Source of the DNA: Bigelowiella natans CCMP2755
Lineage: Eukaryota > Protista > Cercozoa
Length of the DNA stretch: 64,000 nucleotides
NCBI GenBank assembly: GCA_000320545.1
Contig: ADNK01000875.1
Location: forward strand, 1 to 64,000
Reading direction: 5' to 3'
Shown: positions 16,362-56,925 of the stretch, in pieces
How the letters are laid out: each line of letters begins with the position of its first letter
Numbering within the stretch: the first letter of the stretch is position 1
Notes under the pieces: generated by a model
Seen by the model: only the letters and a program-made list of their open reading frames with translations
Told to the model about the DNA's origin: nothing
The model's database searches: none
Position numbers and translations under genes: made by a program

Positions 16362-16564
16362 TGACGTTGTGAAATTTTGTAATTAAACATGCAAAATGAC
16401 AGTGCTAGAGTGTACGTGGTGATGCGTTGATGCCCGCACTAGAACATTTGCATTTAACGAAAGCATTGGCTCCAGGACTAGAGTAGCTGTGCGCGGCGTA
16501 GGGGCAAGCAACATGCATGCAAACAAGATGCGAGACATCACATTGTGTGATTGCCTGTGTCGTA

Positions 16565-17600
16565 CGTGCTTTTGATTCGCATTTGCAGACAATCACACAA
16601 CTCAGGATGCTGACAGCAACACTTTCTGTTTCTGATGGCTTTGTTTGACATGTGACATGACGTCTAGACGTGCGAGCTTTTTCCGGCTAGCCGGCTGGCT
16701 AGCAGCAAGTAGTCACAAACTCTGCAGAACTGGAAGACAAGAGTTGCGCCATGCGTCGTTGCAGTGTCAACAAGGAGCGTGCAGGCGAGCGCATGGGATG
16801 CCAACACAGCCAGCCCTAGCCAGCCAGAGCCATAGCCAGGAAGCGATGCACAATGCAGACGAAGTTGGAAAAGAACGTGGGCAGTTCTCAATTTGTTTGC
16901 TGGATCTCATGATCGCATGTGATCGTGCATGCAATGACAACACCAGAACAGCTAGAAAAGCAGCGAAGCACGCTGGCACGTGTGGCGACTGGTTGACGAT
17001 GATGAAAAGGCTTTGAGTCTGCGCTGACAAGCTAGCAAGGCTGCGTGCACCGGCATCGCTGATCTTTGCTTCGTTTGACACATTGTGCAACCAACACAAC
17101 ACGCACGCAGTGCACTGTGTGACTGCCATCTAGCCATGCACGCACATCGCAGACTGGTGCAAGCAGGCCAGCACTGGCAGCAGGCAGTCGCAGGACTGTC
17201 GTTCATCGTTCACTCTCAATCAGTCACATGGCGCGTGAAACCACACCTGTTGAGACGTCACAGATGGCACGTGTGTGAGCCTTTTCTGTTGGCACCTTTT
17301 TCATCGACGCGGAGCGTGAAAACGTGAACGAGGCCCACACAACACGCACTCTTGATCGACACGGTCTCAATCGTGTTGATGCCTCGCTAGCTCGCCACAG
17401 GCTAGCAGGCAGCACAGACCTCCTCAACCGAGAACTGAGCAGTGTTCGAACAACGCCCGGAGTTGTTTCAAGAAAGAAGGAAAGCTCAATGATCGACTGC
17501 ACGGAGTCAACAATGACAAACTACATGGACGCACGATCAATGAAGTTGGGCAGTGCACATCAGCGACATACAAATGATGAACATTCGGCGATTTTTTGAT
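16565..17600. other. TpA-depleted island, possibly a decayed mobile element or pseudogene
   Basis: Hand count over 16621-17520: 11 TpA in 900 bp, 9 of them in CTAG; no credible ORF or splice chain. Confidence 0.6.
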
Positions 17601-18037
17601 TCAATAATTCCAAAAAGTGCGATTTCTTCTCCTTACCTGTTAAATTTTGATAAATCCATCGAAATTGACTGACTTTTGACTAGAAAATGGACAAGATTCA
17701 ATGAAAAGAAAAAGTCGGTCCAAGGCGTAGCTCAATACGTTTGGGTGAGGATTTTGTTTGAAGATTACCTTCAAATAGTCACTACGACAAAGAGAAAATG
17801 TGAAAATAGTTTGATTTTGGACACTTGTGGATTCGTCCGGTCAGAGTAAAAAGGCGTGAGATTTTCAAGATAGCTCTAATTTGTATGCATCCTAATTGCC
17901 GTTATATATTCAAAGAAAGTATATTATTTTGATGTCGTAGAATATTATAGCATTGTTTTTCATAGTAAAGGCCTGTTTTCCTGTATTAAGCAACTGTCTG
18001 AGGTTCTTCGACACTGCATTCCCCCCACCCTACTACA

Positions 18038-18484: not shown

Positions 18485-18749
18485 ATGATGTGTTGATGAA
18501 TGCTGCGATTCCAAGGAATTGAGACCACTTGAGACAATACCACCGCTTATAGTGATACCAAAAACATTGGGAAGTCATGGTCGATTATTGCCTGTCGATT
18601 CCAGTATCATCCCACTTAGTGTTGCGATCGATCCATAAATCTAATCAGATCATCATGCTAGAAAAAAAGAACGACGATGTTTATGTGCATGTAATGTGCA
18701 TACCCACACACATCCACACACGCTTTATGTGTGTGTGTACACGTATATA

Positions 18750-18751
<2 letters not shown>

Positions 18752-18804
<53 letters not shown>
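18752..18804. repeat. (TA)n microsatellite
   Basis: Directly visible. Confidence 0.95.
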
Positions 18805-18807
<3 letters not shown>

Positions 18808-18822
18808 TAATTTATATAATTA

Positions 18823-18872
18823 TTTTCAATGGTCATCCTAATGTAGCTATGCAAAGCAGCGGCCGCCAGCGC
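18823..18872 (+). repeat. Dispersed ~80 bp two-hairpin repeat, partial copy
   Basis: ttttcaatggtcatcctaatgtagctatgcaaagcagcggc is identical to the core of the 49905-49984 copy. Confidence 0.9.
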
Positions 18873-19519
18873 GTGCATTTATTATCGCCTTGTTAATCGA
18901 TTCATGCGCTAGCAGCTAGCTAGCTAGGCAGAAGGTGTAGCTAGCCGCTTTTGTATGTCTAGCTAGATGTGCACACCATGCTAGCATGCACTAGAACATA
19001 CCAGTAGCTACGTCATTTTTCATACACGCGATGTGTTAATTTGAATGCTTTATCCTATATAGCAAGCAGTATTGCAGGTACGTCTAGACGTGCGTAGCGT
19101 ACGTTATTATATGACCGTAGCAGCGCGTTGACAACTCAACATTACTTTCACATTGCACGCTAGCATGTCTATGTATAGTCGGCTAGCTAGCTAGATGTTT
19201 TCGTCATGATCATGCATGCTGCACATCCTGCTAGCTAGCTCATATGTGTGGCGTCTCTAGCTGTGCGAAGTGTGCATGCAATAACAACAGATGGATAGCC
19301 ATTGCAACACATGCGATGCGCAATCAAAATAACATCGTACAAAAATGACCATAATGATGACGATGCATGCACTTTCACCAACGGTGTGGCCCGCATCGCG
19401 AGATCGGAATATATAACTCTCAGGATCCACTAACCTTTCCATACCACACCTCCTGAGGAAAAATTCGAAGATGAAAGCAAAATCTTTGCTGCATGAAGTC
19501 TTAGATTTATCATGGCGTA

Positions 19520-25529: not shown

Positions 25530-26175
25530 CTTCCTTGCGTGTGCCCGTAGTGCTACACCAGCATAGCTTTCCTATTTTTGACCAATCCAAATGATTTACA
25601 AGCTTTATGCACACAATTCTTTTCTAAATAAAACAAATAAATAGCGGCAGCACTGGGTTATGTTGGCATCGCATGGAGAATATAGATAGAGTAAGTCAAT
25701 AACTGCTAGTATTACACAGTATTACGCATGCTACCATATATGCATATCTCTGTGATGACATGACATCTATCGACATCTTGCAGGTCGATCTAGAGGTGCA
25801 CAGCACCGCGCACACTGTAGTAGCACGGTCAGAACGTAGATTTTATCTTGCTGTACGTGTGCCATTTACGCCATAGCATAGCTAATAGATAGCTAAGAAT
25901 ATCTCAGATATGGCGGTGTCGTGGTGCGTCATTGCATTGCGTTCGCTGCATACTGTCGCTAGATCGCTAAATAACAACAAGCACACGTACATGCTACTTT
26001 GTTGTCTAGCTAGTTGTGTGCATACTGATATACTGATCGATCCGGCTGGATAGACGACGGCCACGCGCAACGTACGTCCATCCGAGAATATTACGGCGTT
26101 ACACAATTGGATGTACCATTCAATCGAAACCCAACCGAAAGCAAAAGAGGCATATTAGATTAGATAATAATGACA

Positions 26176-26254
26176 CGCTGTAGCTTCAGCATTGCACAGC
26201 TAAATTAGGATTACAACTGAAAAAATGTAATGACTTCATTACATCCGTCTCATA
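26176..26254 (-). repeat. Dispersed two-hairpin repeat, diverged copy
   Basis: cgctgtagc..ttgcacagcta.attagga..tgaaaaaatgtaat..ttcattacatccgtctcata aligns to the reverse complement of 49905-49984. Confidence 0.8.
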
Positions 26255-30025: not shown

Positions 30026-30521
30026 TAAATATGTTAATATGTATTTACATAGCTACACATAGCATAAAAACGCTATTTGTGTTACAATTTGGTCTGCCGA
30101 ACGTACGACGACTGTAACTAGCTGCTACTACATGCACGTATTCTGTTAGATTGTGGCATACAGCCAACCACTTGCATGAGCTGACATGCTGCCGTCTGGA
30201 TCGATGTGCGCAGCCGCGTCATCTAGTCACGTGTCTGGCTAGCTGGACTAGCATCAAATAACAACGTACCATAGTACATGCGCGGCAACATGGATGAGAG
30301 ACTTCATGTCTAGAATACGTGCACACGCGTAAACACACATGTCTAGCTAGATGTAGCAATTGTCTCTCAAGGTCTTCATGTAGCATGTGTGCTTGAAAAA
30401 AGACGTCCGGAATTATCTTCATGTATGTCGGCACATGAACCCCAATGATTTCAGCGAAATGAATAATGTACTACACTTGTACATGAAAACCATCATAGCG
30501 GAAACCAGCAGGCTCAACATT

Positions 30522-30743
30522 AGCGCTGTAGCCGCTGCTTTGCATAGCTACATAAGGATGACCATTTGTGATCAAATTTAATTGATCAATTACACATGGT
30601 CTTGCATTAGCGCTGTAGCCGCGCTGCTTTGACGCTTTGACTAGTTGAGTATAGTGCATGTCTACATCGTATGCATATAGCTTTTAATGAGGATGACCAT
30701 GCATTGAACAAATGTAATTGATTAATTACACCCGTCTCACATA
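30522..30743 (-). repeat. Two tandem copies of the dispersed two-hairpin repeat (30522-30605 and 30609-30743, the second with insertions)
   Basis: agcgctgtagccgctgctttgcatagctacataaggatgaccatt, then agcgctgtagccgcgctgctttg...ggatgaccat..attacacccgtctcac. Confidence 0.85.
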
Positions 30744-41436: not shown

Positions 41437-41510
41437 TAGCCGCAGCTTTATACAGCTACATTGAGATGACTTTTGAAAAAATGTAATCATTTCATTATGC
41501 GTCCGTCTCA
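41437..41510 (-). repeat. Dispersed two-hairpin repeat, diverged copy
   Basis: tagccgcagctttatacagctacattgagatgacttttgaaaaaatgtaatcatttcatt..tccgtctca. Confidence 0.8.
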
Positions 41511-49904: not shown

Positions 49905-49984
49905 TATAAGACGGATGTAATGAAATGTTTAAATTTTTCAATGGTCATCCTAATGTAGCTATGCAAAGCAGCGGCTACAGCGCT
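49905..49984 (+). repeat. Dispersed two-hairpin repeat, most intact copy, 6 bp after the ZRANB3 stop
   Basis: tataagacggatgtaatgaaatgtttaaatttttcaatggtcatcctaatgtagctatgcaaagcagcggctacagcgct; stems GGATG/CATCC and TGTAGC/GCTACA. Confidence 0.9.
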
Positions 49985-50310
49985 CAAGTTGTGTCTATTT
50001 GTTTCCAGTGTCACGTGTTGCATGCATGAGAAAGCATTGCAATTTGGTCGGTCATGCCGTTCTTTGCGCGCAGCAGTGCGAGATTGTCTCTAGTGTTCAT
50101 GCACAACCATCTAGACTATGATACAACAGTCTATTGGGCAGGTATCCTAGACGAATCTTGAACACACATGCTAGCATGCAATGTTTGTAATGTCTAGTAC
50201 GATCACATGCCATGCTATTCAGTATGATGTGCGTGTCGTGACGATGATCGAGTGACAGCAAGTTGCATGCATCGTCATGTACGTCAGCCGCCTCTAATCG
50301 CAGCATGACG

Positions 50311-50425
50311 ATGCGAGACGGATGTAATGAAGTTGTTAAATGTCTTCGATTTAATGGTCATCGTATCCTAACAATAATGTATATCGTAGCTGTACAATGT
50401 AGCAATGCGCAGCGGCTACATCGCT
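50311..50425 (+). repeat. Dispersed two-hairpin repeat, copy expanded by short insertions
   Basis: gagacggatgtaatgaa...aatggtcatc..cctaa..tgta..gtagct..gcagcggctacatcgct. Confidence 0.8.
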
Positions 50426-50912
50426 TAATTAAGTTGATATTACATTATTCGCTTGACATTGCCACTGCTGTGACAGCTAGCTGCTAGCGACCGCCGCAGT
50501 CGCTGGCGAGCGCGCACGTCGCATCGTCGCACACACGTCTAGACGTAGCTACGTACGATACGTGCATGCTTCGGCGACGGTACACATCGATCATGCTAGC
50601 ATGCGTGTTCATATTGGTATCGGTACACTTATCACACACACACACACACGCACAATGCTAGCATGCACGCATACACGCGCGTGGCCCGGAATGCCGCTTC
50701 ACTTCAGTGAAGTCGTCAATCGGCAATACAGTCTGAGATCGAACACACAAGACGTCGATCATTCTAGCTAGCAGTGTGCGCATCCATCATCAAATACATA
50801 CATCGCATCACATAGGCACATGCGTGCCCGAGTTCCATCGCTTGCGTACAAAAATGTGTCAACGAACACACACTCACACGCCTCTGGACTCAAGCAAGAA
50901 TGAGAGGGAGAG

Positions 50913-50965
<53 letters not shown>

Positions 50966-51146
50966 ACGAGAAGAGGAGTAGGGGGAAAGGAAAAGGATAC
51001 TGTCGTAGTAGAACTTCGGACAATTTATACGTTTGTAAATCAAAAGTTTGTTTTACTATGTAAGTTAGTAACGTAATAATTTGTGCATCATCTCAGAACA
51101 TGATATGACTGGCACAGTTCTAATGTCCACAATGTAAGTAGCCAAA

Positions 51147-51706
51147 CTACTCCAGGTAAATTCCAAATACCATGCAGACACAAAAAAGCGAATCCTGTAT
51201 AGAACATCCCAAATATGTTTCAACATATTGAATCAACTGAATGAATGAAAATGATACTTACGTTCTTAAACCACCATGAGGCATAGTTATCCTTTTGGTG
51301 ATCCCATAAGCATCTCGACGTAACGTATGCTCCTTGGTCCTTAACTTGACCCATCACCGTCTGTACAATGATTTTGTACCTTGTGTATCCAAATTCTAAA
51401 ATACATCACACAACAATGAGATGTGCGTATCACCTGAAATTGGCATTTATAATCTCGAAAATGTGCAAGTAAATTCTTCTCTCTAATCAAGGAGTGGATA
51501 CCTTTTATCTTATCTTTAACATCCCTGCTTAATTCCACACTCATATCTTTAACTTTCGCATCATCGTAAACCATATCTTTCAGCTTTGAATCCATTACGC
51601 TTTGCACAAGCTGTTTGACTTTGTGAGGCATAAATTTTTCCTCCTTTGAAGGTTCCAACTCATAGGTGGGTTGTGCAAAACCCTCGTCTTCTTCGTCAAA
51701 ATCCAT
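51147..51706 (-). CDS. Tctex-1 domain dynein light chain (TCTEX1D2-like), 3 exons
   Basis: PTYELEP..KF, RYKIIVQ..GQVKDQG....SRCLWD..DNYAS..FKNDSLFCV..VFGIY. Confidence 0.9.
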
Positions 51707-52370
51707 TTTGTCTTTGTTCTCTGCACGGATCTACTCTGTTTCACAGAAGAGAGCGCGTCGGGGGGGGGAACTCGGTTTGGATTCCTACGAAGAGTGAAAT
51801 ACCCTGAATATTCTTCCCGCGGCATGACTTTATTCAAGTCGTATCATGTAATTCCTTCACGTTCAGCACCGTTTTTGCAACCTTCTGTTTCCCACAAACC
51901 GGTTTGCACATTGGGTTCAGACCTATATTCTTCAAGATCGCAGTGATTCCCTTCGCATTTCTATGCATAAATTGGCAATATAGTTCATAATGATGATCTT
52001 TATGATCCTTTTTCAGAAATATATTATTTTACGGGATTAGTATCGGACTGGTAATTTCTTCAACTCTGGACCGAATGCATAGGTGTTGTCGCAGTCATAT
52101 ATTCCTCGACAATCTTCGAAGATGTACACAAGCAGTGAGAAAGAATAATATTTCTGGTTGTCGTAATAGATGACTCCTTCATATTTATTGTTATTGTCTC
52201 ATTAAAATGATGTCGTATTGATAAATTAACCGATAACATCATATAGATATGACATTCAGGGAGAGAGCATTGTGCTGAAACTAAACCTCTTCGGCGGCGG
52301 TGGCGCACACCCTCCGTGACTTGATCCTTACTAGTTGACGTCTCGGGGAGCTCCACCAACTGTTATCCAG

Positions 52371-55300
52371 ATGTCGGGGCTGAAAAAACTGCAGCACCTT
52401 TCATTGGTGCAGAAGGTGTGTGAAGAGCTGGAAAACCACCTCGGTATTAATAATAAGGATCTCGCTGAGTTCATTATACACCTCGCATCGAAAGCAAAAA
52501 ATGGCCAGGATTTTCAGAAGAAGGTTTCTGAGAATGGTGCCGAACTCAAAAGCGCCTTTGCAGAGAGTCTCTACAGGATCATCAGTGTCATGAAGCCAAA
52601 GAGTAACGTCGAATCGGGGAAGAAGAAGGCGAAAAGGGGAATGGATAATGAAAAATATATATCAGATCATAAGAATAAAAAGGCCCATGCATTTCCTGGT
52701 CTCGCAATGCCAAACCGGTCAACAGATCACCTTTTGAAAGAAGACGAACCAGTGAGCAGCCGCGATAATGGCGACCGATATGATTCAAAAAATTACAAAG
52801 ATGAATATGGCCGTGATAAGAATCGTAAAAGCAGGTTTGACAGGGATGATGAAGATGATCGAGGAGGGGGGAAACGCTATCGACGCGGTCGACACGGTGA
52901 TGATTCCCCGCCGAGCAAAAGGAGGCGTCCGAAGTCAAACGTTCCAGAGAAATACGAGATATATGATGGAACCATCTCGAAGGTCATGGACTTTGGTGCG
53001 TTTGTGTCTCTCGATGGGTTTCCCGGTCGGGTTGAAGGTTTGGTCCACGTTTCTGCAATACGGCCAGGAGGGCGTATCATGGATCTCAAGGGTGAGATCA
53101 AACGCGGGCAAAAAGTCAAGGTTAAGGTTCTTTCAATGATAGGCTCCAAAATCTCGCTTTCCATGCGCGATGTAAACCAAAAAACCGGCGAAGATCTCCG
53201 ACCGAACACGAGAAGAAACATGGAAAGAGCCCGTGAGCAAAAGCCAAGGGTTCAACGCAAATTTGAGGATGACCATGTTCGCCCAACCAAGACCCTATCG
53301 GAACAGGAAAGGTGGGAACTTAACCAGCTAATAGCAGCTGGTGCCATCCCAAGATCAGAGGGTGTAATGAGCACCGAAGATTCTGAAGGCAAGAAAGTCA
53401 TGGTGGTAGAAGACGCAGAGGAAGAACTTGAAATTGAGCTGCGCGAGGAAGAACCTTCATTCTTAAGGGGACAAACAGAGCTTTCAACAGATCTTTCCCC
53501 GGTGAAAGTAGTCAAGAATCCTGAGGGGAGTCTTAACCGTGCTGCATTGACTCAAAGCGCCCTGGCGAAGGAGCGTCGAGAGCTTCGTGAGCAACAACGA
53601 ACGCAGATGTTAGATAAAATCCCTCAGGACATCTCAAAGTCATGGGAGGACCCAACAGCAAAAGCTCAAGATAGGCACCTTGCAGCCAGCCTGAGAGATA
53701 TCGGTCAGGGTGTAGGGTATGAGATCCCAGAGTGGAAGCGCGAGACCGTGAATAAGAACCTTTCCTATGGTATCATCACGAATAAGTCCATTAAAGAGCA
53801 GCGGGAAGGGCTGCCGATATATAAGCTACGCAATCAGCTGTTACAAGCTGTTGCTGATAACCAAGTCCTTGTCGTCATTGGAGAAACGGGGTCTGGAAAG
53901 ACAACCCAAATGACGCAGTATCTCGCTGAGGCAGGATATACGTCCAAGGGGAAAATGATTGGTTGCACCCAGCCTCGTCGTGTGGCAGCCATGTCTGTCG
54001 CCAAGCGTGTAGCTGAGGAGTTTGGATGTCGCCTTGGCCAAGAGATTGGTTATTGCATCCGTTTTGAAGATTGCACTGGACCCGAAACACAGATCAAATA
54101 CATGACCGACGGTATGCTTTTAAGGGAGATTCTTGTCAACCAAGATCTGAAGCGCTACTGTTGCATCATGCTGGATGAGGCACACGAGCGCACGATTCAC
54201 ACCGACGTTCTGTTTGGGTTGCTCAAATCACTTGTCAAGCGTAGGAAGGATTTGAAGCTAATCGTTACCTCTGCTACCTTAGATGCTGAGAAGTTCTCCA
54301 ACTACTTCTTCGACTGCCCTATCTTCACCATCCCGGGGCGCACGCACCCTGTCACCATTCTCTACAAGGAAGAGCCAGAGCAAGATTATCTAGATGCAGC
54401 ATTGATCACCGTGATGCAGATCCATTTGTCGCAGCCCGCAGGGGACATTCTCCTCTTCCTCACGGGAAAGGAAGAAATCGATACGGCATGTGAGATTCTA
54501 TACGATCGCATGAAAGCTCTGGGCCCTGATGCCCCTGTGCTGCACGCTCTTCCGGTGTACTCAGCACTGCCTTCGGAACTCCAAACACGAATCTTTGAGC
54601 CTGCTCCGCGAGGGACACGCAAATGTGTCGTTGCTACCAACATTGCAGAGGCCTCGCTTACTATTGACGGCATCTATTACGTCGTAGACCCTGGCTTTTG
54701 CAAACAGAACGTCTACAACCCAAAGCTAGGAATGGATTCCCTGGTCGTCACCCCGATTTCGCAGGCATCAGCAAATCAGCGAAGTGGCCGTGCAGGACGT
54801 ACAGGCCCTGGGAAGTGCTTTCGGCTTTACACAGAGACGGCTTTCAAAAACGAGATGCTCCCATGTAATACCCCGGAGATCCAACGTGCGAATCTTGGGA
54901 ACATTGTCCTAACGTTGAAGGCGATGGGTATCAACGACATGCTTGGCTTTGACTTCATGGACCCCCCTCCAGTACAAACTATGGTAACGGCTCTGGAAAC
55001 GTTGTACACGTTGGGGGCCCTCGACGAGGAAGGCTTGCTTACTCGTCTCGGAAGAAAAATGGCCGAGTTCCCGCTGGAACCATCCCTCTCCAAGATTCTC
55101 ATCACGTCGGCAGATCTTGGTTGCTCCGAAGAAATCCTCTCCATCGTTGGCATGCTCAGCGTCGAGGATATCTTCTACCGACCAAAGGAGAAGCAAGCGC
55201 AGGCTGATATGAAAAAAGCCAAGTTCTTCCAGCCCGAGGGCGATCACCTGACGTTTCTCACCGTGTACCAGAGCTGGGCACACAACAAATTCTCCAACCC

Positions 55301-55778
55301 GTGGTGCTACGAGAACTATCTGCAAGCGAGAGCTCTTCGCCGGGCACAGGACGTGAGAAAGCAGTTAGTGCAGCTCATGGATCGATACCGTCTGCCGATC
55401 GAATCGTGTGGCAAAAACTGGAATCGGTTACGGAAGGCCATCACCAGTGGATACTTCATGAATGCCGCCAAGAAGGATCCGCAAGAAGGCTACAAAACTA
55501 TCGTCGAGGGCCAACCCGTGTACGTGCATCCTGGCTCTGCCCTGTTCAACCGCCAACCTGACTGGCTTATCTACCACCAGCTTGTCCTCACCTCGAAGGA
55601 ATACATGCGCAGTTGCATGACAATTGAGCCCAAGTGGTTGGTGGAGCTAGCACCCAACTTCTACAAGAAATGTGATCCTAACGTGCTCAGTAAGCGTAAG
55701 AGAAGGGAGAAGATTGAACCCCTCTATGATCGATACCATCCTCCAAACGAATGGCGTCTCAGTCGTCGTCGTGGTTAA
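52371..55778 (+). CDS. DHX8: Pre-mRNA splicing DEAH helicase PRP22/DHX8, intronless
   Basis: S1 domain, [35 protein letters not shown]-terminal [16 protein letters not shown]. Confidence 0.97.
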
Positions 55779-56589
55779 GCGCATTATACGCTACGCTACA
55801 CGACAAAATCCGTATGGATGCAACGACTCAAAGGCAGATGAGGAGATATCGTTATCCGCCTACTATCCGTTGTACAATTATTGTAGTTGTTTGTATCTTT
55901 AGTGCAGCGTAGTATCTGAGCTATCAAATGATGTAAAAAAAAATGCATTTTTATTATATAAAGTGACAACAGACATATGTATATTTTCATCTTTATGTCA
56001 AGTGTGCATTGACAAACACAAAAATACATGATCTAGATGATGTATTAATGTAGGCGACGTATGAAAGCGCAGTAGCTTTTGGGCAATAATCTACCATACG
56101 AGCATGCCATCTAGGCATGCTGCAGCTCGGTGTTAACGCTGCTAGTGTCATGACAACGACGGTATCGGTCTCCATGACGTTTACATGTGCGTAGCCATAC
56201 AGGTTACTGTGGCCATTCATCGCAGTGCATTGTTAACATTGATCAGCTAGCTATGAGCACACGCAGTAAAGCAACAAGCGCAATGCAAGAGCCTAGCTAG
56301 CTAGATAGGCTGATCTGAACTCTGAATCAACATGAATCTCACTGATGTGTACCAAAATCGCGCGGTGTTTTGCCCAAGTGCATGTATGGCACAGTTTGCC
56401 ATCTTGCATGCTAGGCCGCCTCCTCATACAATTGATCACAACAAGGTTAAGAGCCTACTATGCATGTTAGCTATGCACAATGCGACATCAGGATTAGAGG
56501 AACTAACGAAACATGCCGCTGTTTAGCACTGACACATGCACTCATGTTGGAGGCAGTTCTTGTAAACTAGAAGCTTCATGTTCAATTCA

Positions 56590-56651
56590 TTGCACAGCTA
56601 CATCAGGATGACCATTGAAAAAATTTAATTCTTCATTGCATCCGTCTCATG
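56590..56651 (-). repeat. Dispersed two-hairpin repeat, partial copy with several TA->CA/TG differences
   Basis: ttgcacagctacatcaggatgaccattgaaaaaatttaattcttcattgcatccgtctcatg. Confidence 0.88.
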
Positions 56652-56925
56652 TTCAATTCAAAATATTCACACATCATTGCACATAGCTAGATAGATTACA
56701 GTATCTGCGGCACATACACCGCATCTAGACAAGTCGGCAAGTTGCCAAGTGACTGAGTGTTACTTTACTCGTTGCTACCACGCACAAACTAAATCTATAC
56801 ATGCAATTATGTGCATAAAAATAGATGAGAGCCAGATTACTCTCTGCACGATGAATGGTGACGTTTTCATGATCAACATTCTATCTGAGTTATCTAGTTT
56901 TAGGGCCCAGCACAAGTTTGCATCC

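Follow-up and report, generated by a model that had tools for sequence, protein, structure and literature searches.

The stretch of DNA analysed here, referred to as the window, comprises 64,000 nucleotides (nt) of the Bigelowiella natans CCMP2755 genome (contig ADNK01000875.1, positions 1 to 64,000). It contains a genuine inverted match of 61 nt, whose arms (49906–49966 and 56590–56650) are 85% complementary. A first reading, made from the sequence alone, had noted that the two copies differ at TpA sites and proposed that TpA is being converted to CpA or TpG, both here and in all convergent spacers. A 17-mer taken from the arm is found five times in the window against 0.34 occurrences expected, and the arms therefore belong to a family. 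We show here that the members of this family are the 5'-truncated 3' tails of a non-LTR (non-long terminal repeat) retrotransposon of the long interspersed nuclear element (LINE) class, with seven clear copies and one doubtful copy in the window (Table 1). The differences between the two arms are probably (we would put the probability at roughly 0.8) for the most part the footprint of a DNA-level mutator that has already been described in B. natans (Mettrop et al., bioRxiv 2026; 10.64898/2026.01.13.699255).

The assignment to a LINE rests on both the ends and the coding capacity of the element. The terminal 18-nt motif has 1,306 genomic occurrences (with at most one mismatch) compared to none for a reversed control. 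The 3' end (...CATCCGTCTCAT) is common to all copies and the 5' start is variable, giving element lengths between 28 nt and over 1,500 nt, and the copies are bounded by target-site duplications of 8–13 nt which differ from one copy to the next. The tail is predicted to contain a small hairpin, and poly(A) is absent. One of the two arms, the copy at 56588–56650, is 98–100% identical to dozens of other sites in the 91.4-Mb genome. Roughly 12 of the genomic copies are long. The last open reading frame (ORF) of a long copy encodes 498 amino acids (aa). Its full-length alignment to P0001 shows 69% identity; this 553-aa protein carries a reverse transcriptase domain (PF00078, RVT_1) and a YCDD motif with which the LINE ORF aligns. 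Protein models from jgi/Bigna1 are also similar to the LINE ORF, reaching 96% identity. A Pfam search with the 498-aa ORF gave zero matches, as did one with the long copy L126, in which the reading frames are broken; the LINE ORFs escape Pfam because their coding sequence has been stripped of TpA, as described below. The homologue P0001 is encoded on L127, a metagenome scaffold of 1,734 nt from ENA, in which the reverse transcriptase ORF is open and the TpA level (rho(TA) = 0.81) is close to the genome background (0.79). We refer to L127 as the un-erased relative; a form of this kind, with its ORF open, was seen in metagenome sequence only. Its nearest matches in the assembly are 87% identical (G000:C1193:1889-3608 and G000:C436:67165-68382) and may represent less-erased or autonomous members of the group.

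Table 1. LINE tails, target-site duplications and the TpA-erased island of the window.
Feature	Position	Strand	Remark
Sole strongly TpA-erased island of the window	16501..17800		rho(TA) down to 0.15, rho(CA+TG) up to 1.85
LINE tail fragment	18806..18882	-	Adjoins (AT)n microsatellite
LINE tail copy, diverged	26161..26253	+	
LINE tail copy	30482..30594	+	3' end adjoins the next copy
LINE tail copy, second of two	30604..30739	+	Adjoins the first
LINE tail copy	41437..41510	+	Private TG to TA and CA to TA changes (TTTATACAG)
LINE tail copy, older lineage of the same LINE group	49906..50074	-	About 170 nt; keeps TA at three sites that are CA/TG in the young lineage
Doubtful, degenerate tail-like match	50313..50387	-	Weak (E 0.17)
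Left target-site duplication, GTTCAATTCA	56580..56589	+	With the preceding CAT, a 13-nt direct repeat of 56648-56660
LINE 3' tail, 5'-truncated	56590..56650	+	61–63 nt (56588/56590-56650); youngest lineage, F1
Right target-site duplication, GTTCAATTCA	56651..56660	+	Contains the mismatch formerly counted as a fifth substitution

Both copies of the inverted pair were aligned to the LINE-tail family model, and homologous differences were scored outside the central A/T loop. There are four, all of them transitions (CACAG/CATAG, ATCAGG/ATTAGG, TTGCA/TTACA and CTCAT/CTTAT), and each creates or destroys a TpA (P ~0.005–0.014, under a null in which 26–34% of the possible transitions in the 61 nt do so). 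The sequence-only reading had counted five substitutions, all at TpA. Four of these are homologous and do lie at TpA, but the fifth (ATA versus ATG) is flanking DNA, situated 1–2 bases past the 3' end of the element (...CGTCTCAT). It is not homologous to the flank of the other copy because it falls outside the element, inside the 10-nt target-site duplication GTTCAATTCA of the 56590 copy. Of the further examples cited in support of the same process, the CACAG near 26195 is correct. The apparent change of TCTTATA to TCTTGCA near 30600 is the point at which two tail copies meet, where the sequences compared are not homologous. An ancestral TATATAG, proposed near 41447, is not supported at two of its positions: the GC-to-AT doublet there is private to the 41437 copy, with G and C present at these positions in 154 of 161–162 copies. 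The private G to A and C to T changes in TTTATACAG create TpA.

The direction of the pair differences was assessed with the un-erased relative and with a sample of 186 tail copies, drawn from the window and from fetched loci and aligned to 108 model columns. The core of this sample is the first 100 exact-motif sites in contig order, which is unbiased for the rest of the element. A change was scored as private to a copy where the ancestral state was present in at least five of its six nearest relatives with the remaining copies agreeing, and 150 copies were scorable in this way. The un-erased relative carries TA at the CATAG, ATTAGG and TTACA sites, as do the 49906 copy and most of the older subfamilies. 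Judged against these relatives, the CA, CA and TG states of the 56588 copy are derived, such that TpA to CpA/TpG is the correct direction at three of the four sites, and the converse polarity, with CA/TG ancestral, is contradicted by both L127 and the older subfamilies. The derived states occur in 111, 58 and 19 of the 186 copies, respectively. They therefore arose in source elements and were then inherited, and are uninformative about mutation within the spacers at 49.9 and 56.6 kb. The sole change private to either member of the pair is CTCAT to CTTAT in the 49906 copy (C in 159 of 159 other copies). This is a CA to TA change, opposite to the direction that had been proposed, and the proposal thus stands for the three inherited differences but not for the private one.

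Much stronger evidence of TpA loss comes from the LINE bodies. Here rho(TA) is 0.08 and rho(CA+TG) is 1.55, compared to 0.79 and 1.16 for the window, and rho(TA) ranges from 0.07 to 0.16 across bodies. An erased LINE of 3,955 nt retains just 16 TpA, six of which lie within the last 86 nt and four in the interior ~3,400 nt. The remaining six cluster at element positions ~72–435 from the 5' end (L029+L126, G000:C1487:22003-27188, minus strand), and this cluster may mark either a second constrained region (a promoter or 5' untranslated region) or a boundary effect of the mutator. The 126 TpA sites of the un-erased relative are represented in the young lineage by CA at 56, TG at 36, TA at six and CG at five. 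Hence, 92 of the 126 have become CA or TG, and the reverse direction is seen at 0–1 sites. Measured against the same relative, TpA is retained at 2–6 of 13 sites in the tail and at 0–4 of 113 in the body, and the GC content is 49% in the erased lineage versus 37.5% in the relative. The consequences are evident in the protein: at the relative's 13 aligned tyrosines the young lineage has Cys at seven and His at four, including the conversion of YCDD to HCDD. A tyrosine-free reverse transcriptase is implausible as an ancestor, and this comparison therefore polarises the change. The ORF in question (L029:1523-3019, minus strand) has HCDD at the position of YCDD and a single Tyr in 498 aa. A comparison of two sister copies (95% identity) revealed 23 CA-versus-TG swaps, of which 16 fall at TA sites of the un-erased relative, and 41 of their 70 differences in all fall on such sites. 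The swaps are concentrated in the part that lies beyond 740 nt from the 3' end. These opposite choices indicate that erasure took place independently in separate genomic copies, that it occurred in DNA and that it affected both strands. The private spectrum of the bodies, scored by nearest neighbours, was uninformative for TpA (32–49 opportunities only), because almost no TpA is left to convert.

The polarity of the bodies bears directly on the possibility that TpA has been gained rather than lost, that is, that CA/TG is ancestral and that C to T change at CpA, by a process like repeat-induced point mutation (RIP) or by deamination, made the TA states of the older copies. The private CA to TA change in the 49906 copy would fit such a process, as would the two such private changes in the 41437 copy and a 2.7-fold elevation of CpA to TpA change in the tails. 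We nevertheless consider it highly improbable. The TA-bearing relative has an open ORF with RVT_1 and YCDD, whereas the CA/TG-rich lineage has HCDD and is almost devoid of tyrosine; the TpA level of the relative equals the genome background; and the presence of CA and TG as alternatives at one site requires a TA intermediate. RIP-like mutation was accordingly rejected, the direction being opposite (TpA is lost) and the repeats TpA-depleted.

The strand distribution of the changes argues equally against editing of the LINE transcript before reverse transcription, in which an ADAR- or ADAT-like enzyme would edit A after U and the edited RNA would then be copied. The A-after-T/U context suits known adenosine deaminases (discussed in 10.64898/2026.01.13.699255), and three of the pair differences were indeed passed on via retrotransposition. 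Editing of this kind predicts A to G change on the sense strand only. What is seen relative to L127 is 123 T to C and 101 A to G changes on the sense strand (with TA to CA at 56 sites and TA to TG at 36), and a ratio of 24 to 28 in the tails, so that hyper-editing by an ADAR-like enzyme followed by retro-copying was also rejected. Moreover, the sister genomic copies chose differently between CA and TG once they had separated, and the events in the preprint occurred in single-copy integrated viral DNA (10.64898/2026.01.13.699255). Taken together, these points reduce the likelihood of this explanation almost to nothing.

We return to the tails, in which substitution can be followed copy by copy. 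The alignment columns with frequent transitions lie nearly all within TA, CA or TG dinucleotides. Columns with a TA consensus have both CA and TG derivatives and nearly no CG (e.g. TA 131, CA 17, TG 19, CG 0), and the occurrence of both at one site means that TA was ancestral to at least one of them. Private transitions were found at 38 of 723 TpA sites (5.3%) and at 46 of 3154 other T/A sites (1.5%), a difference of ~3.5-fold (odds ratio (OR) 3.75, p = 1.5e-8; 150 tails). The enrichment at TpA noted in a handful of copies thus persists with larger numbers. At C/G sites, the corresponding figures were 31 of 1287 for CpA/TpG (2.4%), 11 of 1228 for other C/G sites (0.9%) and 3 of 383 for CpG (0.8%). 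Transversion rates were flat at 1.5–1.9% across site classes, with CpG at 0.8% (3/383). Loss of TpA exceeded gain by 2.2-fold (bootstrap range 1.3–3.7), and the unbiased subset of tails gave the same spectrum. T to C and A to G changes were balanced (24 versus 28), indicating that both strands are hit. Decay of CpG as the source of the CA/TG alternation in the tail was ruled out, the CG states being nearly absent there. As a separate observation, the CpG columns (32–33, 41–42 and 102–103) display no private hypermutability, their three transitions in 383 falling below the rate at other sites (small numbers), and methylation-driven decay of CpG seems to be weak on these elements. When TpA conversion is set against transversions as a clock, copies of at least 100 nt show 6.5% versus 0.9% and shorter stumps ~5% versus 2.6%. 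This hints that conversion is ~4 times commoner in longer copies, which would make them the better targets.

Several points weigh against the mutator. Private changes from CpA/TpG to TpA are raised as well (2.4% versus 0.9%, OR 2.7), and part of the tail signal could stem from general instability of pyrimidine-purine steps or from mis-polarised sites. The TpA conversions are not over-dispersed among tail copies (P 0.13), amounting to about one per copy, and show no relation to TpA depletion of the flanks, although the process reported in the preprint is regional and episodic. The tail offers only ~9 TpA and 18 CpA/TpG sites, so that site effects are not averaged out. The 186 copies were taken from more than 1,300, with 100 selected on an exact match to the terminal 18-mer and 30 on resemblance to the window copy, and some of their private changes may reflect variation among source elements outside the sample. 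Finally, L127 is a metagenome sister lineage and not a proven ancestor.

Several of these points are what would be expected from ordinary context-dependent mutation, in which pyrimidine-purine steps (TA, CA and TG) mutate more in both directions throughout the genome and there is no targeted mutator. In keeping with this idea, the rates in the tails are above controls in both directions (5.3% for TA to CA/TG and 2.4% for CA/TG to TA), the conversions are spread at about one per copy, and the spacers around the tails are not TpA-poor. It fails, however, on the bodies, where rho(TA) has fallen to 0.08 and 92 of the 126 TpA are converted against 0–1 in reverse, and on the CA/TG swaps between sister copies. 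Even in the tails, AT to GC change exceeds GC to AT change per site (2.2% versus 1.55%), whereas the background spectrum of B. natans is AT-biased, by 2.65 in mutation-accumulation lines and 1.32 among single-nucleotide polymorphisms (10.64898/2026.01.13.699255). We regard context alone as an unlikely account of the pair differences. For the mild private excess in the tails taken by itself, the cause may be either the mutator of the bodies or an effect of context that operates throughout the genome, and we infer that it is the former.

The scale of the effect does not extend to the DNA around the tails. It had been suggested that one process acts, with differing intensity, on an island of low TpA and on all convergent spacers of the window. 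No support was obtained for such an action on the spacers. The repeated units in these spacers are LINE tails, and the DNA that adjoins them has normal or high TpA: rho(TA) is 0.72–1.45 in the 400-nt flanks of the eight window copies, with a median of 1.08 in the flanks of 63 truncated copies. Short tails and host spacers are weak targets at most. A connection between the island (Table 1) and the LINE was considered and is not supported, since BLASTN and TBLASTX comparisons of 16501-17800 with the LINE and all fetched loci gave no similarity. The LINE scrap closest to the island is the fragment at 18806-18882, ~1 kb away.

We favour the mutator, then, and envisage its action as follows. It would convert TpA to TpG, or to CpA when acting on the other strand, and would have stripped nearly every TpA from the LINE bodies, in part through independent events in different genomic copies. 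Source elements would also have had some of their tail TpA converted, and daughter copies would have inherited these conversions, which now distinguish the two copies in the window. Inserted tails, in turn, lose TpA ~3.5 times faster than other T/A sites change. Selection for retrotransposition presumably maintains the TpA that survive in the tail.

The most recently amplified lineage comprises copies that are 98–100% identical over their last 180–670 nt. With HCDD and a single Tyr in 498 aa, it probably encodes no active reverse transcriptase, to judge from the ORF, and probably needs mobilisation in trans. It is possible, if somewhat short of an even chance, that this lineage was stripped of TpA before it spread, and was mobilised in trans with the tail as its only selected part. 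In that case, the mutator would abolish coding capacity without stopping propagation, and the random choice of CA or TG at each former TpA would serve as an internal record of the time at which each copy was attacked.

Simple repeats are a further feature of the locus. Runs of (AT)n, (CA)n, (GA)n and poly-G/C are unusually plentiful across the window, and long (AT)n microsatellites are found at the end or truncation point of many LINE tails, as at 18727-18810 beside the fragment at 18806-18882. Other tails that border (AT)n in their 3' or 5' flanks are those at loci L019, L025, L029, L105, L070, L095 and L040. Either the element endonuclease prefers (AT)n targets or the AT repeats are seeded by the tail.

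The element resembles LINEs of the stringent type (e.g. CR1/L2/RTE style), in which the 3' tail forms a stem-loop and lacks poly(A). It shares with them the fixed 3' terminal motif, the predicted tail hairpin without poly(A), the heavy 5' truncation with variable target-site duplications, and a Cys/His motif C-terminal to the reverse transcriptase. It differs in that its tail often adjoins (AT)n and in that, in its most recently amplified lineage, the body is TpA-erased and the catalytic motif is altered. The erasure itself is similar to fungal RIP, in that dinucleotide-specific transitions degrade repeated or foreign DNA and leave a footprint in dinucleotide ratios. The chemistry runs the other way, however: in RIP, C is changed to T, mostly at CpA, and TpA is created, whereas the process described here removes TpA and increases GC content.

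The closest parallel is the hypermutation of TpA to TpG/CpA reported for B. natans mutation-accumulation lines, in which the mutation rate of an integrated giant virus and a virophage is ~1000-fold that of the remaining genome, with changes in the viral inserts almost exclusively A to G or T to C and all on TpA (10.64898/2026.01.13.699255). The same study describes 124 clusters in the genome that are TpA-poor and CpA+TpG-rich, finds reverse transcriptase domains enriched among TpA-poor coding sequences and clusters, and proposes adenine deamination at TpA with an ADAT2-like deaminase as the candidate enzyme (10.64898/2026.01.13.699255); the identity of the enzyme acting on the LINEs would be putative in the same way. 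The organism, the dinucleotide target and the two strand products are shared with the pattern described here, as are the footprint of low TpA with high CpA+TpG and the targeting of reverse transcriptase sequences. In the LINEs we find TpA transitions, products of both strands, and bodies (but not flanks) that are TpA-poor and CpA+TpG-rich. The preprint is based on de novo events in the integrated giant virus and virophage and on composition scans, without alignment of transposon copies (10.64898/2026.01.13.699255), whereas our evidence is comparative and polarised by an un-erased relative. The signals also differ in scale, being ~3.5-fold and not regional in short inserted tails compared to ~1000-fold and regional in the preprint. 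As the process was reported in 2026 from mutation-accumulation lines, its recognition in this window is a rediscovery, and the present finding confirms the process rather than discovering it. What is added here is the identification of the repeats as LINE tails with ~1,300 copies, a test of polarity by an un-erased relative, and the independent erasure of copies as seen in their opposite CA/TG choices. These results could help to decide whether the mutator is aimed at long foreign or repeated units or at any intergenic DNA.

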